Below, in pieces: positions 16,671 to 64,000 of a stretch of DNA of 64,000 bases. The stretch comes from Octopus sinensis (Eukaryota), in NCBI RefSeq assembly GCF_006345805.1, contig NC_042997.1:193378001-193442000 (forward strand). The letters are read 5' to 3'. The notes below the pieces were generated by a model. The model saw only the letters and a program-made list of their open reading frames with translations, was not told the DNA's origin and did no database searches. Each line of letters begins with the position of its first letter. The first letter of the stretch is position 1. The translations under genes were made by a program, and so were the position numbers.

Positions 16671-16840
16671 AGTAGATGTAAATGTCCAACATGAAGTGTT
16701 TGTAAGGTTTTACAAGTTCATTTTGTTTCATTTATGGAAATGAATTTTTCTAAACTGTTGAAGTAATGCAGAATAATTTGCTACATTATTATATTTATTT
16801 TATCTTTTTCCCTTCTTTGTATACAGTTCATCAATTAAAA

Positions 16841-19800
16841 ATGCCAGAAAATTTGAAAATAAAAAAGAAAGCTACCAAAATGGATAAAAGTCTTGTGAAG
16901 GAGGAATCTGATGAAATTGTCTCTGATGTACAAGCATTTATAAAAGATCTCGGCCTCAATACATCAGTTCCATCTAGTATGAAAAGTAATGTATCTGCAC
17001 AACCACTGCCTGAGGATTTTAACTGGGGTGACATGATGCCAAAGAAAAAAGGAACCGTGCCGCCTTCTGCATCCCAAACTGAAAAAGTGTCAGCTGATAC
17101 ATCAAAGGATGCTGCAGACAGTAAAGGACCAAGTAAAAAAAAATCAAAGAACAAATATAGACCTCAAACAGATGAGGGTGTTGTGGGATTAAATAAAGTT
17201 TCTTCTGAGAAAGTCCAAGATGATGAGATTTCGAGTACCACAAAATCAGTTAAAAAAAAGAAAACTGGCGAGAAAAGTGGTAAGAAAGAATTTATAAAAT
17301 TAGTTGTTGAAGCAGGGACCGTTTGGTATGATTACCTAGAAAAGAAAAACATGGACAACAAGAGTAGAGACAACACCAATAAGACCAAGCGTACCAGTGC
17401 GAAACCTTTGGAGTCGGAAGCTGCAGAAATTTTCCAGAAGGATGTAGAAAATTATAAGAACCTGAGAGCTAAACGGGAACCTTCTGAAAGCAGTTGGTTT
17501 GAAAAGGTTATTGCATCTGGAACTTTGAGCGACAAAGAAGCAGCTTTCCAGCTTTATGTGACTCAATCACCTGTCCACAATCTCGATTCTTTGGATAATC
17601 TTATTGCTATGACACAGAAGAAAAGTCGCCATGTTAACATTAAAGCTGCACTTGTTTTGAAAGATCTTTTTATCAAATATATTTTGCCACCGGACAAAAC
17701 TCTAATGTCATTTCATGAACACAAAACTGATGAATTAAGTAATTCTAATCGAAAGAAGCAACTTGCCTTGTGGTACTTTGAAAACGAATTGAAGAAACGT
17801 TTTGGTGTTTTCGCTGAGTCATTAGTTAGAATGCTACAAGACAATGTCGATGCTTGCAAAGAAAAAGTATTGGCTATTATTAGTGAAATTCTTGTTTACA
17901 CTTCTGAACAAGAGACTATTTTACTGTCATCTCTTGTAAATAAAATTGGCGACCCTAGTTACAAAGTAGCATCAAAAACAATATACGTCTTGTCTAAATT
18001 TTTGAAACTTTGTCCATTGAAAAAATTAAAGGTTATCGATGAGGTAGAAATGCTTCTGTGCCGTTCTGGCATGAAAGAGAGGGGCCTCTATTACGCCTTT
18101 TGCTTCCTCTCTAATCTTCGGTTAAAAGAAGGCGAAAGCAAAATAGCTGAGAAACTTGTCAATGTTTACTTGAAATTCTTCCAGAAATACATTCAAAAAG
18201 GGGAAATGGACAATCGAATGCTTAGTGCTATTCTTTGTGGTATCAATTTTGCTTTTAAAATTATACATGAAAATCGAGAGTTCATTGCAGAACATACTGA
18301 AATACTGTACAAAACTGTACATCTTGTGAACTTTAATACTAGCTTACAGGTAATGATGTTGCTGTATCAAATAATGGAATCAGAAAGTTTATCTGATCGA
18401 TTTTATATGGTTCTTTATCGTAAAATGTGTGACCCTGCCTTGAAGAGTTCAAACCGACACATGCACTTCTTAAATCTTGTCTTCAGAGCCATTAAGAATG
18501 ACCACTCGGAAGCCAGAATAAAAGCTTTTATTAAAAGACTTCTTCAGATATGTCTTTATCAGTATCCTCCTTTCATCTGCGGTTCTCTCTGTCTCTTATC
18601 TGAAGTCTTTCGTGAGAAGCCTAAATTGCTGAACCTGGACCAAAACGCTGAAAACTTGATGGATAGCGAGGATGAGGAATGCTATAAAGATGTTGAGTTA
18701 GACAGTGATACAGAGTCTCCACAACAAGCAGCATCAGATTCAGAGTTGACGAATAAGGATGATAACGAAGAAGATTCCAAGTCATCTGGACAGGTTTCTT
18801 CTTGGGTACATCGTAAAAATTTAAAATATGTTCCCACCAACATATATTATATGCCACATCACCGTAACCCTCTTTATTGTCAAGCAGAGACAACACTATT
18901 TTGGGAATTATACTTACTGTCATTTCATTTTCACCCAACTGTCTCTCTTTATGCTTCGACATTACTAAACAATAAGTTTATTGACCATGAAGGTAATCCT
19001 TTGCAAGATTACACCTTGATACGTTTCCTTGACAGATTTGTATTCAAAAATCCAAAACAAATTAAAGAGAAGTCTTCTGAGCCTAAAAAGAATCGGTATA
19101 TACCAACAGGTATTAAACTAATTCCTGCAAATGATAGAAAATATCTTGAAAAAGCGAATAAAATTCCTGTTGAGGAGAAATATCTCTATCAGTATTTCTT
19201 GCACAAAAAGGCTGTTACTACTGACAAGGGGATTTTCAGTGAGGACGAAGAAGTTAGTGATGATGAATTTGACCAAATTCTTGACCAATATGAAAGAAAT
19301 GCAGATGATAAGGAATTAACAGCATTTGATTTTTATGGGGAACTTGGAAAACAAAGTGCGAAGAAGAGAAGCTTGGAAGCAGATTTTAGTAGCAGTGAGG
19401 GCTCTGATGAGGAGTCAGATGATGAAGTTGACTTAGGAGAAGATTTTATGGCAGAATATAAAGACTTTGGTGGGGAGAGTGATAATGAAAATAGTAACTG
19501 TGAGTTTGATGAAGAAAATATCAAATTTTCTGATGATAGTGATGGAGAGGATGATTATGAGAAATTTTGTAAACCCAAAATTAAAAAACTGAAAAGGCTT
19601 AAAAAGGAATCTGAACAGAATCCTCATGATACGTCTAAGTTTTTCGTGGCTGCCGAGGAATTTTCTCATATGCTAGAAGATAACATTGTGAGTAACATTG
19701 GAAGCCAGGCAGTTGTGAACAAAGACAAATCAAGTGCCAAACAGATGAAATGGGAAATGGCCAGGGAACAGTGGATGAAAAAATCTGATTGGAAACAGAA

Positions 19801-19906
19801 ACGACAGCCAAAATGGAAAAAGAAAAGTGGTAATAAAAGTAAATTTGTTACGAAACCTAAACAGAAAGGAGTAGGGAAAAAACAGAAAAGGAAAAATTGG
19901 AAGTAA
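16841..19906 (+). CDS. CEBPZ: CCAAT/enhancer-binding protein zeta (Mak21/Noc1, CBF domain), single coding exon, about 1021 aa
   Basis: Uninterrupted ORF with family motifs GTLSDK, SSLVNKIGDP, DRFYMVLYRK, RIKAFIKRLLQ, HRNPLYC, HFHPTVSLYA, DYTLIRFLDRFVFKNPK, an acidic tract and a basic C-terminus. Start placed at Met26 of the listed ORF because a polypyrimidine tract plus AG (16825-16826) lies just upstream. AATAAA at 19921. Confidence 0.92.
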   Translation: MPENLKIKKKATKMDKSLVKEESDEIVSDVQAFIKDLGLNTSVPSSMKSNVSAQPLPEDFNWGDMMPKKKGTVPPSASQTEKVSADTSKDAADSKGPSKKKSKNKYRPQTDEGVVGLNKVSSEKVQDDEISSTTKSVKKKKTGEKSGKKEFIKLVVEAGTVWYDYLEKKNMDNKSRDNTNKTKRTSAKPLESEAAEIFQKDVENYKNLRAKREPSESSWFEKVIASGTLSDKEAAFQLYVTQSPVHNLDSLDNLIAMTQKKSRHVNIKAALVLKDLFIKYILPPDKTLMSFHEHKTDELSNSNRKKQLALWYFENELKKRFGVFAESLVRMLQDNVDACKEKVLAIISEILVYTSEQETILLSSLVNKIGDPSYKVASKTIYVLSKFLKLCPLKKLKVIDEVEMLLCRSGMKERGLYYAFCFLSNLRLKEGESKIAEKLVNVYLKFFQKYIQKGEMDNRMLSAILCGINFAFKIIHENREFIAEHTEILYKTVHLVNFNTSLQVMMLLYQIMESESLSDRFYMVLYRKMCDPALKSSNRHMHFLNLVFRAIKNDHSEARIKAFIKRLLQICLYQYPPFICGSLCLLSEVFREKPKLLNLDQNAENLMDSEDEECYKDVELDSDTESPQQAASDSELTNKDDNEEDSKSSGQVSSWVHRKNLKYVPTNIYYMPHHRNPLYCQAETTLFWELYLLSFHFHPTVSLYASTLLNNKFIDHEGNPLQDYTLIRFLDRFVFKNPKQIKEKSSEPKKNRYIPTGIKLIPANDRKYLEKANKIPVEEKYLYQYFLHKKAVTTDKGIFSEDEEVSDDEFDQILDQYERNADDKELTAFDFYGELGKQSAKKRSLEADFSSSEGSDEESDDEVDLGEDFMAEYKDFGGESDNENSNCEFDEENIKFSDDSDGEDDYEKFCKPKIKKLKRLKKESEQNPHDTSKFFVAAEEFSHMLEDNIVSNIGSQAVVNKDKSSAKQMKWEMAREQWMKKSDWKQKRQPKWKKKSGNKSKFVTKPKQKGVGKKQKRKNWK

Positions 19907-25829: not shown

Positions 25830-25869
<40 letters not shown>

Positions 25870-25885
25870 GCATATATACATATAT

Positions 25886-25959
<74 letters not shown>

Positions 25960-44405: not shown

Positions 44406-44568
44406 ACATATATAAATATATATATATGTATTGTCCTCCAGTATAAAGGTCATGGCCATGCAGGGGCACCACAGTATCATCATATTCTCTGTCAGTCTAC
44501 TTATCTATCTTTCTATCTACCTTCCTATCTATCTATCTATCTATCTATCTACCTACCTACCTACCTAC

Positions 44569-44616
<48 letters not shown>

Positions 44617-44831
44617 GTAGCTACCTTTTTATTTATCTTTCTATCTATGTCTGTGAATATAGGCGTAGGAGTGGCTGTGTGGTAAGTAGCTTGCTTACCC
44701 AACCACATGGTTCTGGGTTCAGTTCCACTGCGTGGCACCTTGGGCAAGTGTCTTATACTACAGTCTTGGGCCAACCAAAGCATTGTGAGTGGATTTGGTA
44801 GACAGAAACTATATTATAGTAATTATAATTT

Positions 44832-45656: not shown

Positions 45657-47135
45657 CCGGAGTAAACAAGGTGGAAAAAAGAGTACTCAAATACCAGTGG
45701 TAGAGTAATATGCTTTAACAGAGTAACAGGTTTTGTTGGATTTTCTGCTGCTTTAAATAAGGTATATATATATATATATGTAGTTAAGTCTATGTCTGGT
45801 TATACAGTAGCTTTAGAGTCTGACAAGCCATCCATGGGGCTAAGCCCTTTGTAGTTGCAAAACAATCGGTCATTCGGTAGTCGGAGGACACAGACTAAAC
45901 CGTATATAAATACATAACTGCCGTTTGCTTTTAGAGTGTTCTTCTTTTTTCGGATATCTGATAGATTGACAATATATGTATGTGTGTGCGTCTTTTTTTG
46001 TTTCACTGCTCGTTGTTTTTTTTTACACAATTGTAGTCTAGATGTTCAATAAAATGATACTGATAGAATAAATCCTAGGCACAAAAGTATTTACTGGGAT
46101 TGATGTCATTGACCAAACCCCTCAAGGCATTGCCCCAGTATGGCCGCAGTCCAGTGACTGGCACAAGTAAAAAAAATTAAACTAACGAAATTCATATTAA
46201 ATTTGTAAATTGACTTCTATTTCCTAGAATCATCACAATTTTGAATATAGACAGACAGGCAGATAGAAAGATAGATAGATAGATATGTTTCTTTGTTAGC
46301 CACACAGGGCTGCACACAGACGGGACAGATTACAAAGTAGAGCTGGGGGGGGGGGGCGAGAAAAAGTGTGGTAGGTTTGCGATCAAAAGGGATTGTGAAA
46401 GGAAAAGAAAGAAAAAAAAGAACGATCAATAGGGATCGTGTATCACAGAAATGTCATGATGTAAAGTGTAAAGGGGGAAGCAGATAAGGTTTATCCGTGG
46501 AAAGAAAAGCCTACGGAAAAGACCACGGTAACTTCGGTCAATAATGTTACATGTTACCACATTTGTTTGCAAATAGGTAACCCTCTGTTTTTAATTTTTT
46601 TGGGTTCATAGAATTATGCTCAAGGCGGTTTCGTCATTCATACGTGCCATCCTTGCTACATTCACCCATCTCTTTTGAAACATTCGCTAGACAAAACTTG
46701 CCTCTCTACTCTCACTTTCCTTTTCAAGTGATACTTGAAGAAGTTGATGAGAGATTGACCAGAGAGGAAAGTGTTTGTTCACTAGATACATTCTTTCGCC
46801 ATAGCCACGAGAATGATAAAAATAGCTCTTCCTTCCCGTTTGAAGGAAGGAGGCGTGACAATATTGACGATAGACTCGGCTGATAAACCGACTCGTCCCA
46901 CACGTGACAGCAGTCGTTCGACATAGATAGATATAGATAGATAGAAAGATAGATAGATAGTGGGTGGACTAAATGTAAGGAACATAAATAGCGCTATATA
47001 AGCAAGGGAGATAACTAGAAGCATATTGCGTTTCTAATAAGCTTGAGGACGTAAGCGGTAAATATTTCCCGCAAAATCTTACGTATTTGAATCACTACGG
47101 CAGAAGGTACTTCAGTTAACGGTGTTGCATCAAGC

Positions 47136-47693
47136 ATGTCTAAAAAGCGGCAAGGTTACCTTGAATGGGATGATTACTTCATGTCAGTGGCTTTCCTCTC
47201 TGCTCAACGTAGCAAAGACCCAAGAACTCAGGTAGGAGCTTGTATTGTTAACGAAGATAGACGTATTGTTGGCATCGGATATAACGGTATGCCTCGTGGT
47301 TGTAGTGACGATGATTTTCCTTGGTGCAATGAAGGTGTCACTGAGCTAGATAACAAAAATCTCTACGTATGTCATGCTGAGCTTAATGCAATTCTCAATA
47401 AGAATTCTGCAGACGTTCGCAATTGCACTATATATGTTGGTTTGTTTCCTTGCAATGAATGTACTAAAGTCATTATACAGTCTGGAATTAAAGAAGTCAT
47501 ATACTATTCGGATAAATATAAGGACCAAATTACCTCTAAAGCTTCTCGAATTATGTTGGATCGTGCTGAAATAAAATATCGCCAGTATCGACCTACAAAC
47601 GGACAAATTGTTATAGATTTTACTTCATTAGAAGAAAAGAAAGACCGGATTATAAGTTCAGTTTTGTCCCCCATTTCTGAACTTTCACTTTAG
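47136..47693 (+). CDS. DCTD: dCMP deaminase copy 1 (A type, HAE intact; upstream ATG mutated to ACG at 47097)
   Basis: [49 protein letters not shown]: dCMP deaminase signature with Zn ligands and catalytic Glu; no introns. Confidence 0.9.
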
Positions 47694-47939
47694 TCAGATG
47701 CGAACATAAACACTTGGAATTCATTATATTGCCAACATTGCCTTTTCATAATGATATCCTGTTATATTTTCTAGTTAAAATTAATGGAACTGGTGAAGAT
47801 TTTCTAATTTTTATATGAAATATTAACTGCTGTATTTTTAACGAAAATTTTTATTCCATTTTGTTTTCGTTTGTGTGTACATAATATTTTAACTGCCTCT
47901 TTCTAAGAAAATGAAACTATCCACATTTGTTCCAATACG

Positions 47940-48100
47940 CAGTAGCGTAGCTGGGGTGGGGTGTGTGTGCATTTTGGGCCGCACTTTTAAAGAGGCACCA
48001 CCTTTGAGTCTGCTGTAGATAATGTTTTTTTTTTGTGATGGTCCGGGGGCAGCAAACAGAAAGGCATCCCCGGGCAGCACAGGTTCTAGCTACGCTAGTG
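47940..48100. mobile_element. hAT-like MITE in the DCTD 3' flank
   Basis: CAGTAGCGTAGCT..AGCTACGCTAGTG termini with an imperfect CCAATA(CG/TT) duplication. Complete again at 55325-55485; truncated at about 58450 and 62360. Confidence 0.7.
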
Positions 48101-48359
48101 CCAATATTCCCTCTAACTCCATCTAATAAAAAGTTATCCGACTTCCACCCAGGATGTTGCGTCATCTCACTAGCTTTTCTACTACATACCCACTATTCAC
48201 TGGAGCTGGTTGATCTCATACCTATTCTACTCAGGATCACCCGACTCCCTCTACCCTCTCGTCTCTTATTCATTTGCATAAAACACTACACCTGATCCTT
48301 CTGAGACGTTAACTCTTGGAATATCTTTTCTGGAGTTGTTCAAGAACATCAGTTACATC

Positions 48360-48687
48360 GGTTCTACTACCGAACTGTGTCCCGGTGCGCGCACTCGCAC
48401 ACTCACGCTAGCAAGTCGTAAGTAGTCGATCCTACAACGACTTTTTAACCCTAACCTTAACCCTAATTTTTTAACCCTAAACCCAACCCTAACTCTAACC
48501 TTAGTTTGTTTATAAAAATAATTTATTTACTTAGTTTAAAAAATTATTTATTTTGTTCGAAAAATATTATTTAATTTTCTTTGATATGTATTCAGCCTTG
48601 AAATACAAACATATGCGCAAGTCGTTGTAGGATCGACTACTTACGACTAGCTAGCGCGCACCCGCACCACTGTTCGCTAGTAGTACC
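48360..48687. mobile_element. GGTA/9-bp-TSD MITE with CCCTAA repeats
   Basis: Inverted copy of 6304-6652; TSD AGTTACATC at 48351-48359 and 48688-48696. Confidence 0.9.
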
Positions 48688-49177
48688 AGTTACATCAACT
48701 CAAACAGTTTCGGAGTTGCCTACGAAAGGTCACCAGTGCAGACCCTCACAGGTCAAACCAAACCATAAAAAAAAAATTAGTTCTATTAGGTTAATTATGT
48801 GTTAATTTCCTTAGTTTTCATTATGTTAGTCCCTGAAATAATTGTGCCTATTTTTAATGTTTTATTCTTGTTTTTTTTCCGTTTAATTCTTAGATTATTC
48901 ACATTGTAGTCTTTGTTTAATTTTCAAGTTTATTTGAATTTTATTCTTTATTTTAAAAAACTATTCATTCAAATCTTGATAAGCATGTTATTGTCTAAAT
49001 TTTTCAACCATAGTTTCAAATTCCACTAATTCTCGGAATTTCCTCATGAATATTTTATTCATAATCTATGTTGTACACACCCCCAAACTGTCAACGTCAG
49101 ATGACCCAAATAAAGCAGAGGAAACAAGCAATGGAATTATTTCTATTCATATCCTAAAAGATACAGAATATCTCTGT

Positions 49178-49432
49178 CAGTGGTTCACAACTGGGATTTA
49201 TATGGACCCTGAGGGGGTCCATGTAAGGTTTTGTTGCTAAAATTTTCATCTACATTAAATTGGTTCTATTTGTTCAACACACAAAATATTTTAGTTTTTT
49301 TTTAATAGAATTCTTCATAATATTATAAAAGTATAATAGGATTTCTTTAAACGACGAACGGCTATGGGCGATTCACCTGTGTAAAATGGGAATCAAAGGG
49401 GTCAATAGGTGAAAAGTGGTTGAGAATCACTG
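49178..49432. mobile_element. hAT (Charlie-like) MITE in the array spacer
   Basis: CAGTGG..CACTG termini; TSD ATCT(C/A)TGT. Repeated in the other spacers. Confidence 0.85.
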
Positions 49433-49459
49433 ATCTATGTAATTAAAGTCTTAAAGTTT

Positions 49460-49608
49460 GGATCTTATCACTTTGACCGGCAGATTTTTAAAATAATTAC
49501 TTTGAGAAAAAGATGTTTTATGTAACACACTACCAATATATGAAGTTTGAAAGTGTTCAGTTACAAAGAAATTATTTAAAATATCTACTGGTCAAAGTGA
49601 AAAGATCT
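49460..49608. mobile_element. GGATCT-family MITE (internally deleted here; about 286-bp palindromic form at 51217-51502 and in later spacers)
   Basis: 8-bp TSD TAAAGTTT on both sides; TIR GGATCTT(A/T)TCA..TGAAAAGATCT. Confidence 0.85.
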
Positions 49609-50573
49609 TAAAGTTTTAACTGTGAGAGCAAATGAAATAATATCAGGTATCATATAAAAGTGATATATAACAAATGTCTAATACTATGAAATATAAAAAT
49701 TAAAAAGTATTGTTTGGAATATGCAATCTTTATAATGTAGTCAGTTGTTCTGTTGATTTATATTTTTCTATCTTGAAATAAATATGTTATCAATTCTTAA
49801 TGTTTTTCTAACTTTACTAATGAACTATCCTCAAAAATTTCATATTCTTACTTCTTCATAACATTTCATTGAAGATATTTTTCTGTGAAATTCACCTGTT
49901 GCAGCCAGAAGTCATATTGTATTTTCCAGCATATATATTTCTTTACTGCCCACAAAGGGCTAAACATAGAGGGGACAAACAAGGACAGACAAAGGGATTA
50001 AATCGATTACACCGACCGCAGTGCGTAAACTGGTAGTTTATTTATCGACCCCGAAAGGATGAAAGGCAAAATCGACCTTGGCGTAATTTGAACTCAGAAC
50101 GTAACGACAGTCAAAATACAGCTAAGCATTTTGCCCAGTGCGCTAACGTTTCTGCCAGCTCGCTGCCTTTTCAATTTTTCCAGCCTATATGTTAACACTA
50201 TATATTGTATAAACATGTAGTGTAAAACATTCAGACATCATCATTATCTTCCCATATCCTGTTATACATTCTTTCGCCATTGCCACAAGAATGATGAAAA
50301 TAGCTCTTCCTTCCCATTTGAAGGAAGGAGGCGTGACAATATTGACGATAGACTCGGCTGATAAACCGACTCGCCCCACACGCGACAGCAGTCGTTCGAC
50401 ATAGATAGATAGAGATAGAAAGATAGATAGATAGACAGTGGGTGGCACAAAATGTAAGGGACGTAAATACCGCTATAAGCAAGGGAGATAACTAGAAACA
50501 TATTTGCGTTTCTCATAAGTCGAGGAAGTAATCTGTAAATATTTCCCGCAAAATCTTACGTATTTGATTCACT

Positions 50574-51062
50574 ATGGCAGAAGGTACTTCTGTTAAGGGT
50601 GTTGCATCAAGCAGGTCTAATAAGCGGCAAGGTTACCTTGAATGGGATGATTACTTCATGTCTTTCCCCTCTGCTCAACGTAGCAAAGACCCAAGAACTC
50701 AGGTAGGAGCTTGTATTGTTAACGAAGATCGACGTATTGTTGGCATCGGATATAACGGTATGCCACGTGGTTGTAGTGACGATGATTTTCGTTGGTGCAA
50801 TGAAGGTGTCACTGAGCTAGATAACAAAAATGTCTGCGTATGTCATGCTGGGCTTAATGCTATTCTCAATAAGAATTCTGCAGACGTTCGCAATTGCACT
50901 ATGTATGCTGCTTTGTTTCCTTGCAATGAATGTGCTGAAGTCATTATACAGTCTGGAATTAAAGAAGTCATATACTATTCGGATAAATATGAGGACAAAA
51001 TTACCTCTACATTAAATTGGTTCTATTTGTACAATACACAAAATATTTTAGTTTTGTTTTAA
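50574..51062 (+). pseudogene. DCTD: dCMP deaminase copy 2 (B type, HAG, 6-bp in-frame deletion, 3' end deleted)
   Basis: CHAGLNAI lacks the catalytic Glu; YFMS--FPS deletion. After TCTA (51006-51009) the sequence jumps into the spacer hAT MITE. Confidence 0.85.
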
Positions 51063-52439
51063 TACAATTCTTCATAATATTATAAAAGTATAATAGGATT
51101 TCTTTAAACGACGAACGGCTATGGGTGATTCAGCTGTGTAAATTGGGAATCAAAGGGGGCCATAGGTGAAAAGTGGTTGAGAACCACTTATCTATGTAAT
51201 TAAAGTCTTAAAGTTTGGATCTTTTCAGTTTGACCGGCAGATTTTTAAAATAATTTCTTTGTAAGTAAATACTTTAAAACTTTGTATACTGGTAGAATGT
51301 GTTACATAAAACATCTTCTCATGGTTTTCTTGAGAAAATTCTGTAGTTTGTAACAACAAATAGCTTACAAACTACAGAATTTTCTCAAGAAAGCCAAGAG
51401 AAAAAGATGTTTTATGTAACACACTACCAATATATGAAGTTTGAAAGTGTTCAGTTACAAAGAAATTATTTTAAAAATCTACTGGTCAAAGTGAAAAGAT
51501 CTTAAAGTTTTAACTGTGAGAGCAAATGAAATAATATCAGGTATCATATAAAAGTGATATATAACAAATGTCTAATACTATGAAATATAAAAATTAAAAA
51601 AATATTGTTTGGAATATGCAATCTTTATAATGTAGTCAGTTGTTCTGTTGATTTATATTTTTCTATCTTGAAATAAATATGTTATGAATTCTTAATGTTT
51701 TTCTAACTTTACTGATGAACTATCCTCAAAAATTTCATATTCTTACTTCTTCATAACATTTCATTGAAGATATTTTTCTGTGAAATTCACCTGTTGCAGC
51801 CAGAAGTCATATTGTATTTTCCAGCATATATATTTCTTTACTGCCCACAAGGGGCTAAACATAGAGGGGACAGACAAAGGGATTAAGTTGATTACATCGA
51901 CCGCAGTGCGTTAACTGGTAGTTTATTTATCGACCCCGAAAGGATGAAAGGCAAAATCGACCTTGGCGTAATTTGAACTCAGAACGTAACGACAGACAAA
52001 ATACCTATTTCTTTACTACCCACAAGGGGCTAAACACAGAGAGGACAAAGAAGGACAGACAAACGGATTAAGTCGATTATATCGACCCCAGTGCGTAACT
52101 AGTACTTATTTAATCAACCCCGAAAGGATGAAAAGCAATGTCAACCTCGGCGGAATTTGATCTCAGAATGTAATGACTGTCAAAATACAGCTAAGCATTT
52201 TGCCCAGCATGCTAACGTTTCTGCCAGCTCGCTGCCTTTTCAATTTTTCCAGCATATATGTTAACACAATATATTGTATAAACATGTAGTGTAAAACATT
52301 CAGACATCATCATTATCTTCCCATATCCTGTTGTATTTCACATAAAAATTTTGGTCCTCCAAAGTCGCCTTTGTGTATAAATTAGCCTAACTATTTTGGT
52401 TGTAAACTTTGGTTTTAAAAATTTGATTTTTATGCTGGA

Positions 52440-53625
52440 AAATGCAGGTGAGTTGAAATTGAAAATACATTGACTTTGCTAAGGCTTTCAACTCTGTGCC
52501 ACACAAAAGGCTTATGGTGAAACTCTCTGCAATAGGTGTGGGGGATGACCTTTTTAACTGGTTGAAATCCTTCATCCTCAGCCGAAAGGAGGTAGTCACA
52601 GTTCTAGGACAGCACTCTACACCATATGAGATGTCATCGGGTGTACCACAGGGATCTGTCCTTGGTCCCCTCCTGTTTGTGGCATACATTAATGACATAG
52701 ATGCCAATTTAAAGAATGCCACAGTATTGAAATATACAGACGACATCAAGCTGTACCTTGAAATCAAGAGGACTGATCCTGATGTCTACAACTCTTTCCT
52801 GCAATCAGACCTACACAATGCAGCAATGGATCACAGACTGGCAACTGAAACTGGCTGTGGACAAGTGTACCACCATGCATTTTGGGAGAAAAAACCCTGC
52901 GTCCACATACTCCCTCCACAACACTGATATCAAGAAATCCTCTTGCGAGCGTGACCTAGGCATCACTGTCAGCAGTGATTTGCGTTGGACAAAGCATATC
53001 TCTAAAATTGTCAAGAAGGCCGAGGGTGTCTTGGCATCACTCAGCAAGACTTTTGTTAGCCGCTCTCCAGCCATCTATTTAAAACTGTATACAGCTATGG
53101 TACGACCACACTTGGAATTCGCATCATCAGTTTGGAATCCCTATCTTGCTCAGAACCTTGACCTCCTGGAATCTGTCCAGAGACGTGCAACCAAACGCAT
53201 ACCCTCCATCAGACACCTACCATATTCTGAGCGCATTGTTTCCCTGGGCATGGATTCACTGGAGCTCCGGCGTCTAGCGACGGACTTGGTAAACACCCAC
53301 AAGGTTATCAACCACCTCACCAACAACAACACTGAACACCTTTTTGATCTCCATGTGTCTAACACACGTGGACATGCCTACAAAGTCAGAAAACAGCACA
53401 GCTCCCATGACTTTCGGAAACATTTTTTCACGCTCAGGGTTGCTGAAGCGTGGAATAAACTGCCTGCATCAGTTGTTGACTGCCATGACACTGCATCCTT
53501 TAAGGCCCTCATGCTTCCCGAAATCCGTCGAAACTACACCTGATTATATATACACTTTAGATGAGTTGTAGTGCACCTGAGCACTGTACACAATTATTAT
53601 TATTATTATTATTATTATTATTTTT
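52440..53625 (+). mobile_element. 5'-truncated CR1-clade LINE with RT domain
   Basis: DFAKAFNSVPH..SGVPQGSVLGPLLF..YINDI..KYTDDIKL, then ERDLGI..VRPHLEF..VQRRATK..RGHAYK; frameshift near 52810; (ATT)n tail. Confidence 0.95.
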
Positions 53626-54481
53626 ATTTTGTTTTCATGACACTGACAAAGCTTGCAAAGGCTAAAGGTATTGTATAATTTCTTCTCTGATTAGGTCATC
53701 ATTATCATCATCATTTAATGTCCCTTTACCATGCTAGCATGGGTTGGACGGTTCAACCGGGGTCTGGTAAGCCATGCAGGCTGCACCAGGCTCCAGTCTA
53801 ATTTGGCAGTGTTTCTACAGCTGGATGCCCTTTGTAATGCCAACCACTACGTGAGTGTAGTGGGTGTTTTTTACGTGCCACCAGCACAGGAGCCAGAGCA
53901 GGCTGGCAAACGGCTACGATCAGTTGGTGCTTTTATGTGTCACCGATATGGACGCCAGTCAGGCGGCACTGGCATCTGCCAAGTTCGGATGGTGCTTTTT
54001 ATGTGTCACTGGCATGGGTTACCACATTTGTTTGCAAATAGGTAACCCTCTGTTTTAAATTTTTTCGGGTTCATAGAATTATGCTCAAGGTGTTTTCGTC
54101 ATTCATACGTGCCATCCTTACTACATTCACCCATCTCTTTTGAAGAAGTTGATGAGAAATTGACCAGAGAGGAAAGTGTTTGTTCACTAGATACATTCTT
54201 TCGCCATAGCCACAAGAATGATGAAAATAGCTCTTCCTTCCCGTTTAAAGGAAGGAGGCGTGACAATATTGACGATAGACTCGGCTGATAAACCGACACG
54301 TCCCACATGTGACAGCAGTCGTTCAACATAGATAGATAGATAGTGGGTGGCACAAAATGTAAGGGACATAAATAGCGCTATATAAGCAAGGTAAATAACT
54401 AGAAACACATTTGCGTTTCTAATAAGCTTGAGGACGTAAGTGGTAAATATTTTCGGCAAAGTCTTACGTATTTGAATCACT

Positions 54482-55045
54482 ATGGCAGAAGGTACTTCTG
54501 TTAACGGTGTTGCATCAAGCATGTCTAATAAGCGGCAAGGTTACCTTGAATGGGATGATTACTTCATGTCAGTGGCTTTCCTCTCTGCTCAACGTAGCAA
54601 AGACCCAAGAACTCAGGTAGGAGCTTGTATTGTTAACGAAGATCGACGTATTGTTGGCGTCGGATATAACGGTATGCCTCGTGGTTGTAGTGACGATGAT
54701 TTTCCTTGGTGCAATGAAGGTGTCACTGAGCTAGAAAAGAAAAATCTCTACGTATGTCATGCTGAGCTTAATGCAATTCTCAATAAGAATTCTGCAGACG
54801 TTCGCAATTACACTATATATGTTGGTTTGTTTCCTTGCAATGAATGTGCTAAAGTCATTATACAGTCTGGAATTAAAGAAGTCATATACTATTCGGATAA
54901 ATATGAGGACAAAATTACCTCTAAAGCTTCTCGAATTATGTTGGATCATGCTAAAATAAAATATCGCCAGTATCAACCTACAAACGGACAAATTGTTATA
55001 GATTTTACTTCATTAGATGAAATGAAAGACCGGATTATAAGTTAA
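54482..55045 (+). CDS. DCTD: dCMP deaminase copy 3 (A type, HAE intact; TCA>TAA shortens C-terminus by 11 aa)
   Basis: CHAELNAI and PCNECAK intact; intronless. Confidence 0.9.
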
Positions 55046-57609
55046 GTTTCGTCCCTTCTTTCTGAACTTTCACTTTAGTCAGATGCGAACATAAACATTT
55101 GGAATTCATTATATTGCCAACATTGCCTTTTCATAATGATATCCTGTTATATTTTCTAGCTAAAATTAATGGAACTGGTGAAGATTTTCTAATTTTTATA
55201 TGAAATATTAACTGCTGTATTTTTAACGAAAATGTTTATTCCATTTTGTTTTCGTTTGTGTGTACATAATATTTTAACTGCCTCTTTCTAAGAAAAGGAA
55301 ACTATCCACATTTGTTCCAATACGCAGTAGCGTAGCTGGGGTGGGGTGTGTGTGCATTTTGGGCTGCACTTTTAAAGAGGCACCACCTTTGAGTCTGCTG
55401 TAGATAATGTTTTTTTTTTGTGATGGTCCGGGGGCAGCAAACAGAAAGGCATCCCCGGGCAGCACAGATTCTAGCTACGCTAGTGCCAATTTTCTTCTAA
55501 CTCCATCTAATAAAAAGTTATCCGACTTCCACCCAGGATGTTGCGTCTTCTCACTAGCCTTCCTACTACATACCGACTATTCACTGGAGCTGGTTGATGT
55601 CATACCTATTCTACTCAGGATCACCCGACTCCATCTACCCTCTCGTCTCTTATTCAAGAAAGTAGCACGGATATTGTGTGTGGACGGAACCGCATGAATG
55701 CAAAACAGGATGAAACCCAGGTATCAGTGTGGAGGCGGGGCTCGTGGGGTCCAAGCTAAACCTGTCCCTCCACTCCATCTGTAATGTTTTCCAGTCTGTA
55801 TTAGCATTCGATTTCTCCGATTTCATTATATGTTTGTAATTATGTGTAAATTTTTAATTTCATCCTTTGTGTAAAATCATTCGTGAATCTGACCCCAAAT
55901 CAGGTTCTTTGTTCGCCCCTTGTGGGTACTAAAAAAACAGGTATGTATGTGTGTGTGTGTGTGTGTTCCCCCCACTCCTCTGCTTGACAACTATGTTTGG
56001 TGAGTTTACATCCCCATAACTTAGTGGTTCAGCAAAAGAGACTGAAGCGATATATACTCAGCTTAAGAAAAAAATTCCTGAGGCTAAAATTCTTCAAAGT
56101 GTATTCCATCATGGCTGCAGTCTAATGATTAAAACAAGTAAAAAATAAGACATAAGTATGTACACACATACGAAATAAGGTCAAAAATTATCTGCACTCT
56201 TGCCATAACAAATCTTTATTGTTGTGACACTGCCTTCAGTGCATGCATACTTATAGTTGGTACTATTTTGGTGACGTGATCAAAGTTTGAGTCTGATTGG
56301 GCCATTTTTCTTTCTGGCATCACAGTGTAAGCATAGTCACTCCACTAGCAATGAGCACCAAAGAATAACAAAGAGCAGTGATCTGAGAGATGGTAATGGT
56401 ATGGTCAGAGGACACAGACTAAACCGTGTATAAATACATTACTGCCGTTTGCTTTTAGAGTGTTCTTCTTTTTTCGGATATCTGATAGATTGACAATATA
56501 TGTATGTGTGTGCGTCTTTTTTTGTTTCACTGCTCGTGTTTTTTTTTTTACACAATTGTAGTCTAGATGTTCAATAAAATGATACTGATAGAATAAATCC
56601 TAGGCACAAAAGTATTTACTAGGATTGATGTCATTGACCAACCCTCAAGGCATTGCCCCAGTATGGCCGCAGTCCAGTGACTGGCACAAGTAAAAAAAAT
56701 TAAATAACGAAATTCATATTAAATTTGTAAATTGACTTCTATTTCCTAGAATCATCACAATTTTGAATATAGACAGACAGGCAGATAGAAAGATAGATAG
56801 ATAGATATGTTTCTTTGTTAGCCACACAGGGCTGCACACAGACGGGACAGATTACAAAGTAGAGCTTTTTTGGTGGGGAGGAAAAAAGTGGGGGTAGGTT
56901 TGCGATCAAAAGGGATTGTGAAAGGGAAGGAAAGAAAAAAAGGGGAAAAAAAGAACGATCAATAGGGATCGTGTATCACAGAAATGTCATGATGTAAAGT
57001 GTAAAGGGGGAAGCAGATAAGGTTTATCCGTGGAAAGAAAAGCCTACGGAAAAGACCACGGTAACTTCGGTCAATAATGTTACATGTTACCACATTTGTT
57101 TGCAAGTAGGTAACCCTCTGTTTTAAATTTTTTCGGGTTCATAGAATTATGCTCAAGGCGGTTTCGTCATTCATACGTGCCATCCTTGCTACATTCACCC
57201 ATCTCTTTTGAAACATTCGCTAGACAAAACTTGCCTCTCTACTCTCACTTTCCTTTTCAAGTGATACTTGAAGAAGTTGATGAGAGATTGACCAGAGAGG
57301 AAAGTGTTTGTTCACTAGATACTTTCTTTCGCCATAGCCACAAGAATGATGAAAATAGCTCTTCCTTCCCGTTTAAAGGAAGGAGGCGTGACAATATTGA
57401 CGATAGACTCGGCTGATAAACCGACATGTCCCACATGTGACAGCAGTCGTTCGACATAGATAGATAGATAGTGGGTGGCACAAAATGTAAGTGACATAAA
57501 TAGCGCTATATAAGCAAGGTAAATAACTAGAAACACATTTGCGTATCTAATAAGCTTGAGGACGTAAGTGGTAAATATTTTCGGCAAAGTCTTACGTATT
57601 TGAATCACT

Positions 57610-58206
57610 ATGGCAGAAGGTACTTCTGTTAACAGTGTTGCATCAAGCATGTCTAATAAGCGGCAAGGTTACCTTGAATGGGATGATTACTTCATGTCAG
57701 TGGCTTTCCTCTCTGCTCAACGTAGCAAAGACCCAAGAACTCAGGTAGGAGCTTGTATTGTTAACGAAGATAGACGTATTGTTGGCATCGGATATAACGG
57801 TATGCCTCGTGATTGTAGTGACGATGATTTTCCTTGGTGCAATGAAGGTGTCACTGAGCTAGAAAACAAAAATCACTACGTATGTCATGCTGAGCTTAAT
57901 GCAATTCTCAATAAGAATTCTGCAGACGTTCGCAATTGCACTATATATGTTGGTTTGTTTCCTTGCAATGAATGTACTAAAGTCATTATACAGTCTGGAA
58001 TTAAAGAAGTCATATACTATTCGGATAAATATAAGGACCAAATTACCTCTAAAGCTTCTCGAATTATGTTGGATCATGCTAAAATAAAACATCGCCAGTA
58101 TCAACCTACAAACGGAAAAATTGTTATAGATTTTACTTCATTAGATGAAATGAAAGACCGGATTATAAGTTCAGTTTTGTCCCCCATTTCTGAATTTTCA
58201 CTTTAG
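57610..58206 (+). CDS. DCTD: dCMP deaminase copy 4 (A type, full length 198 aa, HAE intact)
   Basis: All motifs intact; intronless; upstream 56405-57609 duplicates 45888-47096. Confidence 0.92.
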
Positions 58207-60332
58207 TCAGATGCGAACATAAACACTTGGAATTCATTATATTGCCAACATTGCCTTTTCATAATGATATCCTGTTATATTTTCTAGCTAAAATTAATGG
58301 AACTGGTGAAGATTTTCTAATTTTTATATGAAATATTAACTGCTGTATTTTTAACGAAAATTTTTATTCCATTTTGTTTTCGTTTGTGTGTACATAAAAT
58401 TTTAACTGCCTCTTTCTAAGAAAATGAAACTATCCACATTTGCTCCAATACGCTGTAGCGTAGATGGGGTGGGGTGTGTGTGCATTTTGGGCCACACTTT
58501 TAAATTCTTAGATTATTCACATTGTAGTCTTTGTTTAACTTTCAAGTTTATTTGAATTTTATTCTTTATTTTAAAAATTATTCATTCAAATCTTGATAAG
58601 CATGTTATTGTTTGAATTTTTCAACCATAGTTTGAAATTCCACTAATTCTCAGAATTTCCTTAAGAACATTTTATTCATAATCTATGTTGTACACACCCC
58701 CAAACTGTCAACGTCAGATGACCCAGATAAAGCAGAGGAAACAAGCAATGGAATTATTTCTATTCATATCCTAAAAGATACAGAATATCTCTGTCAGTGG
58801 TTCACAACTGGGATTTATATGGACCCTGAGGGGGACCATGTAAGGTTTTGTTGCTAAAATTTTCATCTACATTAAATTGGTTCTATTTGTACAATACACA
58901 AAATATTTTAGTTTTGTTTTAATACAATTCTTCATAATATTATAAAAGTATAATAGGATTTCTCTAAATGACGAACGGCTATGGGTGATTCACCTGTGTA
59001 AAATGGGAATGAAAGGGGGCCATAGGTGAAAAGTGGTTGAGAACCACTTATCTATGTAATTAAAGTCTTAAAGTTTGGATCTTTTCAGTTTGACCGGCAG
59101 ATTTTTAAAATAATTTCTTTGTAAGTAAATACTTTAAAACTTTGTATACTGGTAGAATGTGTTACATAAAACATCTTCTCATGGTTTTCTTGAGAAAATT
59201 CTGTAGTTTGTAACAACAAATAGCTTACAAACTACAGAATTTTCTCAAGAAAGCCAAGAGAAAAAGATGTTTTATGTAACACACTACCAGTATATGAAGT
59301 TTGAAAGTGTTTAGTTACAAAGAAATTATTTAAAATATCTACTGGTCAAAGTGAAAAGATCTTAAAGTTTTAACTGTGAGAGCAAATGAAATAATATCAG
59401 GTATCATATAAAAGTGATATATAACAAATGTCTTATCCTATGAAATATAAAAATTAAAAAAATATTGTTTGGAATATGCAATCTTTATAATGTAGTCAGT
59501 TGTTCTGTTGATTTATATTTTTCTATCTTGAAATAAATATGTTATCAATTCTTAATGTTTTTCTAACTTTACTAATGAACTATCCTCAAAAATTTCATAT
59601 TCTTACTTCTTCATAACATTTCATTGAAGATATTTTTCTGTGAAATTCACCTGTTGCAGCCAGAAGTCATATTGTATTTTCCAGCATATATATTTCTTTA
59701 CTGCCCACAAGGGGCTAAACATAGAGGGGACAAACAAGGACAGACAAAGGGATTAAATCGATTACACCGACCGCAGTGCGTAAACTGGTAGTTTATTTAT
59801 CGACCCCGAAAGGATGAAAGGCAAAATCGACCTTGGCGTAATTTGAACTCAGAACGTTAAGACAGTCAAAATACAGCTAAGCATTTTGCCCAGTGCGCTA
59901 ACGTTTCTGCCAGCTCGCTGCCCTTTCAATTTTTCCAGCCTATATGTTAACACAATATATTGTATAAACATGTAGTGTAAAACATTCAGACATCATCATT
60001 ATCTTCCCATATCCTGTTGTACATTCTTTCGCCATTGCCACAAGAATGATGAAAATAGCTCTTCCTTCCCATTTGAAGGAAGGAGGCGTGACAATATTGA
60101 CGATGGACTCGGCTGATAAACCGACTCGTCCCACACGCGACAGCAGTCGTTCGACATAGATAGATAGAGATAGAAAGATAGATAGATAGATAGACAGTGG
60201 GTGGCACAAAATGTAAGGGACGTAAATACCGCTATAAGCAAGGGAGATAACTAGAAACATATTTGCGTTTCTCATAAGTCGAGGAAGTAATCTGTAAATA
60301 TTTCCCGCAAAATCTTACGTATTTGATTCACT

Positions 60333-60911
60333 ATGGCAGAAGGTACTTCTGTTAAGGGTGTTGCATCAAGCAGGACTAATAAGCGGCAAGGTTACCTTGA
60401 ATGGGATGATTACTTCATGTCAGTGGCTTTCCTCTCTGCTCAACGTAGCAAAGACCCAAGAACTCAGGTAGGAGCTTGTATTGTTAACGAAGATCGACGT
60501 ATTGTTGGCATCGGATATAACGGTATGCCTCGTGGTTGTAGTGACGATGATTTTCCTTGGTGCAATGAAGGTGTCACTGAGCAAGAAAACAAATATCTCT
60601 ACGTATGTCATGCTGGGCTTAATGCTATTCTCAATAAGAATTCTGCAGACGTTCGCAATTGCACTATGTATGCTGCTTTGTTTCCTTGCAATGAATGTGC
60701 TAAAGTCATTATACAGTCTGGAATTAAAGAAGTCATATACTATTCGGATAAATATAAGGACCAAATTACCTCTAAAGCTTCTCGAATTATGTTGGATCGT
60801 GCTGAAATAAAATATCGCCAGTATCAACCTACAAACGGACAAATTGTTATAGATTTTACTTCATTAGAAGAAAAGAAAGACCGGATTATAAGTTCAGTTT
60901 TGTCCCTGTAG
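60333..60911 (+). CDS. DCTD: dCMP deaminase copy 5 (B type, HAG: predicted catalytically dead but ORF essentially complete)
   Basis: CHAGLNAI with Zn ligands His, Cys, Cys retained. The stop codon comes from the inserted element. Confidence 0.75.
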
Positions 60912-62085
60912 CAATATCGTCTCTCATTGCTATCTTCACTGTTTGAGAAGAGTATTAAGAATGACCTCGGTCGAGATTACAAACAGCTTTGGCTAGTTTA
61001 ACATTGTTGTAAACACTAATTCGATTGGCTGACACGTTGGTCTCTACTACGCTCGCACCGCTGGTTATAACTTGGCGCAAAATGTCTCGACTTATTTTCG
61101 CGCCATAGTCCAAGCAGCCAATCACAGCTTTCCATTTCTGAAGTTCACTGGGAGCCTGGTGAAGCTTATAAAACAAGGTTTCTCAGAAAAATATTCGTCT
61201 TAGGTTTCCAGTCCTTCTCAGGGCGAACCTCTGACCACACAGAGCTCGTCTTAGGTTTCCAGTCCTTCTCAGGCGAACCTCTGACCACACAGAGCTCGTC
61301 GTAGGCTTTTAGTTCTTTTAAGAGCTAAGTCTCTGACCACACAGAGAATACTCGACCAAGTTCCAGTTTCGAGGCAAGCGACCACCATTATACAAGATGT
61401 TACAGATACCTAACATACTGTTAGTGTGAAATATCACCATGAAGAAAACGGTTACAAGATATCTATAACTAGAGAACAATAACCAAGCAGAACATCTGAT
61501 GAAGAAGCAGCAAGAACCAATCGACAAACATCGAAGATTTAAATTGTACACGAGACGACAACAGATTCAACTATAGCGGTTAGGTGAAATTCTCGCCACG
61601 AAGAAAACGGCTACAGTAACATGTCTGGAAGTATATTCATATCAAGAGAAAGAGAAACACAACGAGTGATTCAATTAATCTCAACTGCGACACGCAATAC
61701 CTTGATATAGAACTCTTACAGTGTACCTCATAAACGGTAAATCAATTATCTGTTCTTGGGTTCTAGTTTCTTCTAAGAACTACCTTAAGCCATCTGTTAT
61801 TACCTGTTGCCAAGCCGATACCAACAACATTAACTGTGAATCAAATCCCATCGACAATTCACTGGTCAGTACCTTTTTACGCCTAACGAACACACAGACA
61901 CAAAAACATGCGAACACTTACAACTTCCAACATCAAACATGATTGTAAAATATGTAAAATAAATAATGTATATATCTTAAAAAGAAATCTTGTTGTCATT
62001 ACAAACTTATGTGTATTGCCGCTGCATGTAAAATATAGTCAGTAAAATATATTAATAAGAATAGGATCACGTAACTATTTTTATA
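60907..62085. mobile_element. Probable solo LTR inserted in the last codons of DCTD copy 5
   Basis: 4-bp TSD TCCC (60903-60906, 62086-62089). Starts TGTAGCAATA and ends TATTTTTATA (degenerate inverted end). TATAAAA at about 61167; internal 51-bp tandem duplication 61195-61295. The DCTD 3' end resumes after it. Confidence 0.7.
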
Positions 62086-64000
62086 TCCCCCATTTCTGAA
62101 CTTTCACTTTAGTCAGATGCGAACAAAAACACTTGGAATTCATTATATTGCCAACATTGCCTTTTCATAATGATATCCTGTTATATTTTCTAGCTAAAAT
62201 TAATGGAACTGGTGAAGATTTTCTAATTTTTATATGAAATATTAACTGCTGTATTTTTAACGAAAATTTTTATTCCATTTCGTTTTCGTTTGTGTGTACA
62301 TAAAATTTTAACTGCCTCTTTCTAAGAAAATGAAACTATCCACATTTGTTCCAATACGCAGTAGCGTAGCTGGGGTGGGGTATGTGTGCATTTTGGGCCG
62401 CACTTTTAAATTCTTAGATTATTCACATTGTAGTCTTTGTTTAACTTTCAAGTTTATTTGAATTTTATTTGAATTTTATTCTTTATTTTAAAAACTATTC
62501 ATTCAAATCTTGATAAGCATGTTATTGTCTGAATTTTTCAACCATAGTTTCAAATTCCACTAATTCTCGGAATTTCCTTATGAATATTTTATTCATAATC
62601 TATGTTGTACACACCCCCAAACTGTCAACGTCAGATGACCCAAATAAAGCAGAGGAAACAAGCAATGGAATTATTTCTATTCATATCCTAAAAGATACAG
62701 AATATCTCTGTCAGTGGTTCACAACTGGGATTTATATGGACCCTGAGGGGGACCATGTAAGGTTTTGTTGCTAAAATTTTCATCTACATTAAATTGGTTC
62801 TATTTGTACAATACACAAAATATTTTAGTTTTGTTTTAATACAATTCTTCATAATATTATAAAAGTATAATAGGATTTCTTTAAACGACGAACGGCTATG
62901 GGTGATTCACCTGTGTAAATTGGGAATCAAAGGGGGCCATAGGTGAAAAGTGGTTGAGAACCACTTATCTATGTAATTAAAGTCTTAAAGTTTGGATCTT
63001 TTCAGTTTGACCGGCAGATTTTTAAAATAATTACTTTGTAACTAAATACTTTAAAACTTTGTATACTGGTAGAATGTGTTACATAAAACATCTTCTCATG
63101 GTTTTCTTGAGAAAATTCTGTAGTTTGTAACAACAAATAGCTTACAAACTACAGAATTTTCTCAAGAAAGCCAAGAGAAAAAGATGTTTTATGTAACACA
63201 CTACCAATATATGAAGTTTGAAAGTTTTCAGTTACAAAGAAATTATTTTAAAAATCTACTGGTCAAAGTGAAAAGATCTTAAAGTTTTAACTGTGAGAGC
63301 AAATGAAATAATATCAGGTATCATATAAAAGTGATATATAACAAATGTCTTAAACTATGAAATATAAAAATTAAAAAGTATTGTTTGGAATATGCAATAT
63401 TTATAATGTAGTCAGTTGTTCTGTTGATTTATATTTTTCTATCTTGAAATAAATATGTTATCAATTCTTATGTTTTTCTAACTTTACTGATGAACTATCC
63501 TCAAAAATTTCATATTCTTTCTACTTCTTCATAACATTTCATTGAAGATATTTTTCTGTGAAATTCACCTGTTGCAGCCAGAAGTCATATTGTATTTTCC
63601 AGCATATATATTTCTTTACTGCCCACAAGGGGCTAAACATAGAGGGGACAGACAAAGGGATTAAGTTGATTACATCGACCGCAGTGCGTTAACTGGTAGT
63701 TTATTTATCGACCCCGAAAGGATGAAAGGCAAAATCGACCTTGGCGTAATTTGAACTCAGAACGTAACGACAGACAAAATACCTATTTCTTTACTACCCA
63801 CAAGGGGCTAAACACAGAGAGGACAAAGAAGGACAGACAACGGATTAAGTCGATTATATCGACCCCAGTGCGTAACTAGTACTTATTTAATCAACCCCGA
63901 AAGGATGAAAAGCAATGTCAACCTCGGCGGAATTTGATCTCAGAATGTAATGACTGTCAAAATACAGCTAAGCATTTTGCCCAGCGTGCTAACGTTTCTG

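Follow-up and report, generated by a model that had tools for sequence, protein, structure and literature searches.

A tandem array of deoxycytidylate (dCMP) deaminase (DCTD) genes occupies 45.8-64 kb of a 64,000-nucleotide stretch of Octopus sinensis DNA (CM016859.1, ~193,378,001-193,442,000; hereafter "the window", to which coordinates refer unless otherwise stated). We consider it likely that the octopod DCTD gene has recently expanded in tandem to form this array, whose copy number is polymorphic, and that the array illustrates the birth-and-death evolution of a duplicated housekeeping gene. A preliminary description of the window had claimed a real tandem array of at least five intronless dCMP deaminase genes, and the claim is upheld: five copies are found in the window and a sixth lies beyond its end. 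The net effect of the expansion would be, at most, a modest and variable increase in DCTD dosage, not a new system.

The array in the window is made of five head-to-tail open reading frames (ORFs) on the + strand, 162-198 amino acids long, each of them a single uninterrupted frame. When the window was searched by tblastn with copy 4 as the query, exactly five + strand copies were detected, named c1 to c5 in their order, and zero further DCTD copies were found in positions 1-45000. Start-to-start spacing from c1 to c5 is 3471, 3914, 3128 and 2723 bp. Beyond the window, at a distance of 2.2 kb from its end (window-equivalent position ~66246), lies the sixth copy, c6 (XP_029638125.1), and no additional copy was detected in the 10 kb after it. 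On both sides the array is bordered by single-copy flanks that are colinear with those of Octopus bimaculoides, a species with one DCTD gene at this locus. The native flanks are found at the two ends, upstream of c1 and downstream of c6, and the array can therefore be considered complete at six copies.

The array genes are annotated in RefSeq/ENA as deoxycytidylate deaminase-like. One RefSeq model, XP_029642106.2 (50574-60911), fuses the 5' part of c2 with the 3' part of c5, and its "intron" of ~10.3 kb holds c3 and c4. This model is almost certainly a homology-driven chimera of two copies that belong to the same sequence type (type B, described below), and it hides c5 as a separate gene.

The proteins encoded in the array show 64% identity with human DCTD along their whole length. 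Every copy matches PF00383 (dCMP_cyt_deam_1) with an E value of ~1e-27 (94 bits, compared with a cutoff of 25). Alignment of c4 with human DCTD (PDB 2W4L) yields an E value of 1.4e-66, with query residues 16-180 matching chain residues 4-168 without gaps. These alignments identify the array copies as true DCTD orthologues.

The preliminary description had also proposed that the cluster might be a nucleotide-depletion antiviral system. In a defence scenario, the amplified enzymes would either drain deoxycytidine nucleotides or introduce mutations into viral nucleic acid, as bacterial anti-phage deoxycytidine triphosphate (dCTP) deaminases and APOBECs do. The case for it is one of general analogy: immune genes often show tandem amplification and rapid amino-acid change, weak domain-level similarity to the PADLOC dCTPase and NCBIfam NF041025 profiles was detected, together with a sub-threshold APOBEC4-like Pfam hit. 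However, both defence profiles match the shared deaminase domain only, and their defining N-terminal part is absent: the NF041025 profile reaches 72 bits, compared with a cutoff of 400, and is matched only at positions 338-403 of 437, while the PADLOC dCTPase profile is matched only at positions 438-509 of 630. Furthermore, the array proteins resemble human DCTD from end to end, they retain the motif for allosteric regulation by dCTP and deoxythymidine triphosphate (dTTP), they have neither added domains nor a signal sequence, and the best-conserved type is the canonical one. A defence function seems therefore very unlikely, and the antiviral proposal is not sustained.

Comparison of copy number across cephalopods, a check that the preliminary description had put forward, yielded five copies in O. 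vulgaris, one in O. bimaculoides and one in Argonauta hians. The O. vulgaris genome, which was assembled independently, contains a complete five-copy array at the same site (CAI9716572-76, named v1-v5). Units v3-v4-v5 are colinear, junction by junction, with c4-c5-c6 of O. sinensis. The first two O. vulgaris units are unlike c1-c3, and both the number and the order of copies differ between the two species. In O. bimaculoides, the single syntenic DCTD gene (XP_014791316.1) is intronless and lies downstream of a gene with a CBF/Mak21 domain; the corresponding gene region of the window (18385-19999) matches positions 1-1609 of the O. bimaculoides locus (L002) at 95%. The Argonauta gene is likewise intronless.

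Copy number appears to vary also within O. sinensis. The preprint of Calcino et al. (bioRxiv 10.1101/2020.09.15.298695) includes "Deoxycytidylate deaminase in O. sinensis" with its tandemly duplicated clusters and treats it as partly hemizygous, and the segments that they call hemizygous hold three O. sinensis DCTD genes. By elimination, these genes are probably c1, c3 and c4. If so, their hemizygosity would be compatible with a haplotype of three copies, arranged C-B-A (after the sequence types of its copies) as in O. vulgaris.

The hemizygous calls also bring up an alternative view: haplotigs or mis-joined long reads might have made one or two genuine copies look like an array. The assembly was indeed built from error-prone long reads, and the 5' half of the array is unlike that of O. 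vulgaris. An artefact of this kind would not, however, produce differences of 7-13% in the promoter-proximal regions, nor type-specific substitutions that are common to the O. vulgaris copies. The independent assembly of O. vulgaris with its five copies and the identity of the v3-v4-v5 and c4-c5-c6 junctions are also contrary to it, and no N gaps are present (an assembly gap is likewise lacking near the single O. bimaculoides gene). We thus view an assembly artefact as highly improbable.

The DCTD genes of the molluscs Pecten maximus and Haliotis rufescens have five coding exons spread over 6-8 kb, in line with the statement in the preliminary description that DCTD is normally a multi-exon gene. 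In contrast, all four octopods compared, O. sinensis, O. vulgaris, O. bimaculoides and Argonauta, carry DCTD as one continuous coding sequence, to which an untranslated 5' exon might be added. This distribution indicates that the single-exon state is ancestral for octopod DCTD and not peculiar to the array; in turn, the copy numbers indicate that amplification is restricted to the O. vulgaris/sinensis branch. Judging from the simultaneous loss of all introns, the intron-containing parent was probably replaced by a processed retrocopy. Marks of retroposition such as a poly(A) tract or target-site duplications are expected to be eroded, because the event predates the Argonauta-Octopus split, for which the synonymous divergence (dS) is ~1 or more.

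A separate, intron-containing DCTD gene was also sought. No second Octopus DCTD was found among the 120 best protein hits, a search that covered three annotated Octopus genomes; nor was a canonical second Octopus DCTD detected in the Logan clusters, whose 67-72% matches come from scallop or probably from other cephalopods. Since no other DCTD is annotated in the three Octopus species, the single-exon gene is most likely the working DCTD of the lineage.

The anatomy of the repeated units was examined by comparison with the O. bimaculoides locus. All units share with it ~145 bp before the ATG, the coding sequence and ~170 bp of 3' flank; beyond these, units differ. Spacers are common among units and carry copy-specific insertions and deletions, which supports the earlier contention of a real duplication: c2 shows a 1.29-kb deletion, c5 an insertion of 1181 bp, and a fragment of a long interspersed nuclear element (LINE) lies between c2 and c3. 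At least three kinds of junction are detected. In O. bimaculoides coordinates, they join 12304 to 9856, 12501 to a LINE, and 13825 to 9498. As the breakpoints are different, several duplication events must have taken place.

Coding sequences differ by 1-6% among copies, and the sequence just upstream by 7-13%. Neutral divergence among copies, measured at synonymous sites and in the 3' flank, is only 1-3%, similar to the 0.9-2.6% that separates O. sinensis and O. vulgaris orthologues. In the 100 bp that precede the ATG, divergence reaches 7-13% between types and never exceeds 1.3% within one. The idea that gene conversion had acted on the coding sequence alone was considered and dropped: the 3' flank is as similar as the synonymous sites, so that the unusual stretch is this 100-bp block and not the coding sequence. 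This divergence peak may have escaped homogenisation or may have diverged fast as a regulatory region.

The two arrays together have eleven copies, which can be sorted into three types by their upstream sequence and by fixed substitutions. The PCNEC zinc motif and the GYNG allosteric motif are intact in all copies, including the five of the window; the motif of the dCTP/dTTP allosteric site has been defined as G(Y/W)N(A/G) (PMC12088426). The types can be described as follows:

(i). Type A is found in c1, c6, v1, v2 and v5. The catalytic HAE motif is kept (CAT GCT GAG, at 47373 in c1), and no substitution affects a site with 90% or higher conservation across animals. Three type A copies read ACG in place of the first ATG, and their translation must therefore start at Met14, which corresponds to the N-terminus of human DCTD. 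In c1, the HAE (47373-47381), PCNEC and GYNG motifs are all intact, and no position with 90% or higher conservation is changed; c1 is probably a working DCTD.

(ii). Type C is found in c3, c4 and v3. These copies also keep HAE (CAT GCT GAG, at 54758 and 57886), and are characterised by the substitutions R156H, E158K, E179D and K181M, accompanied in some copies by G68D and Y161H. A private change of c3, C110Y, affects a position that is 98% conserved. In c4, G68D lies four residues downstream of GYNG, and the C-terminal changes are R156H, E158K, Y161H, E179D and K181M.

(iii). Type B is found in c2, c5 and v4. A GAG to GGG change turns HAE into HAG (CAT GCT GGG, at 50844 and 60609, and likewise in O. 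vulgaris v4, CAI9716575.1). Further changes are V114A, G115A and I112M/L, beside the zinc motif, as well as N8K and M14R. Conserved positions are thus hit by E95G (100% conserved) and V114A (99%). The catalytic glutamate is invariant in 105/105 other animal DCTDs, and the sole exception among the 120 best hits is an octopus type B model. The glutamate of the HxE motif is an essential proton shuttle (PMC12088426), and established enzymology leads us to infer that type B cannot deaminate. The presence of HAG in both species places the loss of the glutamate before the O. sinensis/O. vulgaris split. Copy c2 has suffered additional damage: a 2-codon deletion, the changes L34P, P75R, Y90C and K124E at sites with 95% or higher conservation, and the loss of all sequence after codon 152 through the 1.29-kb deletion. 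In c5, the last 7 codons have been replaced by the insertion, and V114A, G115A, I112M and L84Q are present. Later damage to two of the three copies, by truncation in c2 and by clipping in c5, makes it most likely that type B is bound to become a pseudogene.

Selection was considered for the octopod gene, for type A and for types B and C together. Comparison of Argonauta with Octopus yielded ratios of nonsynonymous to synonymous divergence (dN/dS) of 0.15-0.23, and comparison of O. bimaculoides with type A yielded 0.31-0.41. The former values indicate that the single-exon DCTD of octopods has been under long-term purifying selection. Parsimony counts drawn from the site table gave 8 nonsynonymous and 11 synonymous changes for type A (omega ~0.19), below the neutral ratio with P=5e-4. 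For types B and C together, the counts were 32 nonsynonymous and 3 synonymous (omega ~2.9), above the neutral ratio only at P=0.045. The difference between type A and types B+C is supported by Fisher's test (P=1.6e-4). Pairwise dN/dS values between types can be as high as 4.9; however, only 0-3 synonymous differences are involved, and strong positive selection is not claimed from them.

These figures bear on two further points of the preliminary description. The cluster had been called diversifying; the existence of three types and the 32:3 count agree with this term, while the marginal P value and the inclusion of loss-of-function changes (HAE to HAG, truncation, substitutions at invariant residues) do not. 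Divergence by neutral pseudogene decay had been named as a finding that would speak against the proposal: part of the array does fit such decay, while type A is instead under purifying selection. A separate proposal is that all copies are dead retro-pseudogenes and that a real, intron-containing DCTD lies elsewhere in the genome. The copies are intronless, several are visibly broken (c2, and units B1 and B3 of the second cluster described below), and transcript evidence was not found. Even so, low dN/dS over the deep Argonauta-Octopus divergence and within type A would be difficult to explain in dead genes, and the 120 best hits include no other DCTD-like protein from the three annotated Octopus genomes. 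We give hardly any credit to this explanation.

A different possibility is that the three types are kept as specialised isoforms. Catalytically dead type B subunits might enter heterohexamers with types A and C and tune their allostery or activity, and type C might have altered regulation or expression. Several observations are in favour: (i) in the vertebrate protein CDADC1, which forms a DCTD-like ring of six domains, the inactive N-terminal domain has HAG at the position of HAE; (ii) type B is older than the split between O. sinensis and O. vulgaris, retains a full-length ORF in O. vulgaris, and preserves zinc ligands and GYNG; (iii) the residues introduced by its fixed I112M and G115A changes are common in other animals; and (iv) type-specific divergence at -100..-1 and the 32:3 count of types B+C are also as expected from specialisation. 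On the other hand, two of the three type B copies are damaged (c2 by truncation and by substitutions at invariant residues, c5 by the loss of its 3' end and by L84Q), and V114A affects a nearly invariant position. Moreover, with a dS of only 0.01-0.03 between the two species, a 600-bp ORF would be expected to stay intact even without selection; the 4 nonsynonymous and 2 synonymous differences between c5 and v4 are uninformative; and the excess of nonsynonymous changes is marginal, with gene conversion as a confounding factor. On balance, we regard functional diversification as a rather unlikely explanation, albeit one that deserves attention.

A second O. sinensis DCTD cluster was found 18.7 Mb from the array, at ~212.10 Mb of CM016859.1 (positions 3874-4492, 10001-10660 and 16279-16869 of the extracted locus, L001). 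Its three units are 6.2 kb apart and are intronic in a CTP_transf_1 gene of the opposite strand. The intact unit contains a 219-amino acid ORF (XP_036365194.1) with an internal C-terminal duplication. The other two units, B1 and B3, are pseudogenes with stop codons or a frameshift, and they have in common a replaced segment that contains a stop. Because the units carry array spacers, the second cluster can be viewed as a DNA-level copy. The state of its units indicates that it is decaying and mostly dead.

Altogether, these observations outline the sequence of events in the expansion that we favour. Octopod DCTD is a single-exon gene, which probably arose when a processed retrocopy replaced the intron-containing parent. 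After the split from O. bimaculoides, repeated unequal crossing-over gave rise in O. vulgaris and O. sinensis to arrays of 5-6 units placed head to tail; transposable elements inserted, copy order came to differ between the two species, some segments are hemizygous, and one unit was copied 18.7 Mb away, where it is decaying. At present, type A would act as the functional enzyme, an allosteric hexamer that supplies dUMP for the synthesis of dTTP, as its kept residues and its omega value suggest. Type C would probably be active under relaxed constraint, having kept its motifs while accumulating amino-acid changes. Type B would be catalytically dead and most likely on its way to becoming a pseudogene, a state that c2 has clearly reached and that the clipping of c5 announces.

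Certain observations do not fit easily in this account, or admit more than one explanation. No transcript-derived contig in the protein collection encodes the array proteins, and the activity of type A is deduced from sequence. The absence of another Octopus DCTD concerns annotated proteomes, not a whole-genome search. In O. vulgaris, the ORF of the HAG type (CAI9716575.1) has kept its full length, which would also fit functional specialisation, and the sharply type-specific promoter-proximal regions would also fit regulatory specialisation. In types B and C, the nonsynonymous excess is slightly above neutral and most type C changes are at variable positions; hence, positive or diversifying selection is possible. 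Four copies predicted to be catalytically competent are kept in each species, and this could reflect selection for dosage instead of neutral variation in copy number. Lastly, the O. bimaculoides assembly is based on short reads, and a collapsed array in that species is formally possible.

The coordinates of the copies and of associated features are gathered in Table 1.

Table 1. Features of the DCTD array and its surroundings in the window.
Feature	Position	Strand	Description
CBF/Mak21-domain gene, synteny anchor	16766..19906	+	single ORF, 1046 amino acids; PF03914, E 3e-37
Native upstream flank, array 5' boundary	45767..46270	+	matches O. bimaculoides L002 9359-9865 at 88%
c1, type A	47097..47693	+	ancestral ATG changed to ACG; ORF from Met14 at 47136, 185 amino acids
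c2, type B, pseudogene	50574..51062	+	HAG at 50844-50852
LINE-type reverse-transcriptase fragment	52496..53543	+	RVT_1, E 5.6e-12; in the c2-c3 spacer
c3, type C	54482..55045	+	187 amino acids; stop 11 codons early; HAE (54758-54766), PCNEC and GYNG intact
Duplication junction	56400..56429	.	O. bimaculoides-equivalent 13825 joined to 9498
Promoter-proximal/5' untranslated region block, ~145 bp	57462..57609	+	conserved; TATA-like TATATAA at about -102/-103
c4, type C	57610..58206	+	198 amino acids, full length; HAE (57886-57894), PCNEC and GYNG intact
c5, type B	60333..60911	+	192 amino acids; catalytic Glu changed to Gly, HAG at 60609-60617
1181-bp insertion clipping the c5 3' end	60906..62086	.	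unique in the window
100-bp pre-ATG blocks	46997-47096, 50474-50573, 54382-54481, 57510-57609, 60233-60332		type-specific divergence peak

Promoter-proximal blocks equivalent to that of c4 are found at 46951-47096, 50429-50573, 54334-54481 and 60188-60332. The insertion that clips c5 holds three tandem repeats of 50 bp (61195-61346) and has no counterpart in v4, the O. vulgaris orthologue of c5. Dispersed repeats related to the RVT_1 fragment are detected near 3074-6095, 15376-16125, 25065-26397 and 37846-38198.

The neighbour of the array with a CBF/Mak21 domain (CEBPZ/NOC1-like) also looks intronless. Between this gene and the array, on the - strand, positions 28217-33820 contain one uninterrupted ORF of 1867 amino acids, apparently a large intronless gene; its product gave no Pfam match (E<0.01) and no match by sequence to a PDB chain. 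ORFs of 80-111 amino acids on the minus strand upstream of each copy were rejected as genes, as they are low-complexity (IYLS)n readings of microsatellite-like sequence. A (TATC)n microsatellite is found at 44502-44648, and similar sequence elsewhere (for instance at 46782-47024, 54187-54522 and 57315-57650, - strand) yields spurious IYLS-rich ORFs.

The preliminary description knew of no previous account of the cluster. This statement must be corrected, as RefSeq/ENA annotation exists and the cluster is named by Calcino et al. (bioRxiv 10.1101/2020.09.15.298695). A literature search on octopus, cephalopod or mollusc DCTD retrieved only this passing mention. The octopod-wide intronless origin, the restriction of the amplification to the O. 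vulgaris complex, the three types with loss of a catalytic residue in one of them, and the secondary cluster are absent from the literature searched. In our view, the array is an example of ordinary gene-family dynamics: a probable takeover by a retrogene, then tandem amplification within one lineage, with concerted evolution, polymorphic copy number and decay of copies. Its practical relevance concerns octopus annotation, in which a chimeric RefSeq model and catalytically dead copies named as deaminases are found, and also the counts of "gene family expansions" in cephalopods.

Comparison with known systems helps to place the octopus genes. Like animal DCTD (human P32321, PDB 2W4L; EC 3.5.4.12), they are collinear over the full length, encode ~185-200 amino acids and have the allosteric motif in all copies, and types A and C show the HxE and PCxxC motifs. 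They differ from it in having a single exon instead of five coding exons, in the presence of 5-6 tandem copies plus a secondary cluster of three, and in the existence of one type without catalytic glutamate. The likeness to bacterial anti-phage dCTP deaminases (NCBIfam NF041025; PADLOC dCTPase) is a zinc-dependent deaminase domain of the cytidine deaminase (CDA) fold; the bacterial profiles, however, span 437-630 positions, with a large N-terminal part absent in octopus, and the substrate of the bacterial enzymes is dCTP. No sign of a defence context was seen around the octopus genes.

The resemblance to vertebrate CDADC1 is of another kind. Active and inactive DCTD-like units alternate in the CDADC1 ring (PDB 9HFQ-9HFT; PMC12088426), and the protein thus provides a precedent for a duplicated DCTD-like unit, for adjacency of active and inactive units and for an inactive unit with HAG as in octopus type B (PMC12088426). 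Indeed, type B has replaced HAE by HAG while keeping its zinc ligands, as a CDADC1-like inactive partner would do. The differences are, however, considerable. The CDADC1 units are fused in one chain of 514 amino acids with a linker of >100 residues, whereas the octopus units are separate ORFs, 2.7-3.9 kb apart. The active half of CDADC1 is a (d)CTP deaminase, and the zinc of its inactive half is also blocked by a Glu. Furthermore, CDADC1 is an old, conserved protein, whereas the octopus units have diverged by a few per cent and type B shows decay. A more speculative reading is that type B, far from being a pseudogene, could have arisen recently as a pseudo-enzyme subunit, one that would be built into DCTD hexamers and modify their activity or allostery, in an independent, unfused re-run of the CDADC1 step; type-specific promoter divergence would then reflect regulated deployment of active and inactive subunits. 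We consider this scenario improbable.

Two-domain DCTD proteins of Hymenolepis (P0004), Thrips (P0005) and Bradysia (P0006) also contain a DCTD unit duplicated in tandem. Unlike in octopus, both units belong to one predicted protein of 301-338 amino acids and both have HAE and PCxxC; they may be either fusions or merged gene models.

Another member of the CDA superfamily, the tRNA adenosine deaminase ADAT2/ADAT3 (Tad2/Tad3), includes a paralogue without catalytic glutamate that acts as an obligatory non-catalytic partner. In contrast with the octopus genes, this is an ancient, conserved and essential pair that acts on tRNA, and involves neither a tandem array nor decay. If the octopus HAG type turned out to be expressed and incorporated into hexamers, it would provide a very young natural model for the origin of inactive partners such as the N-terminal domain of CDADC1 and ADAT3.

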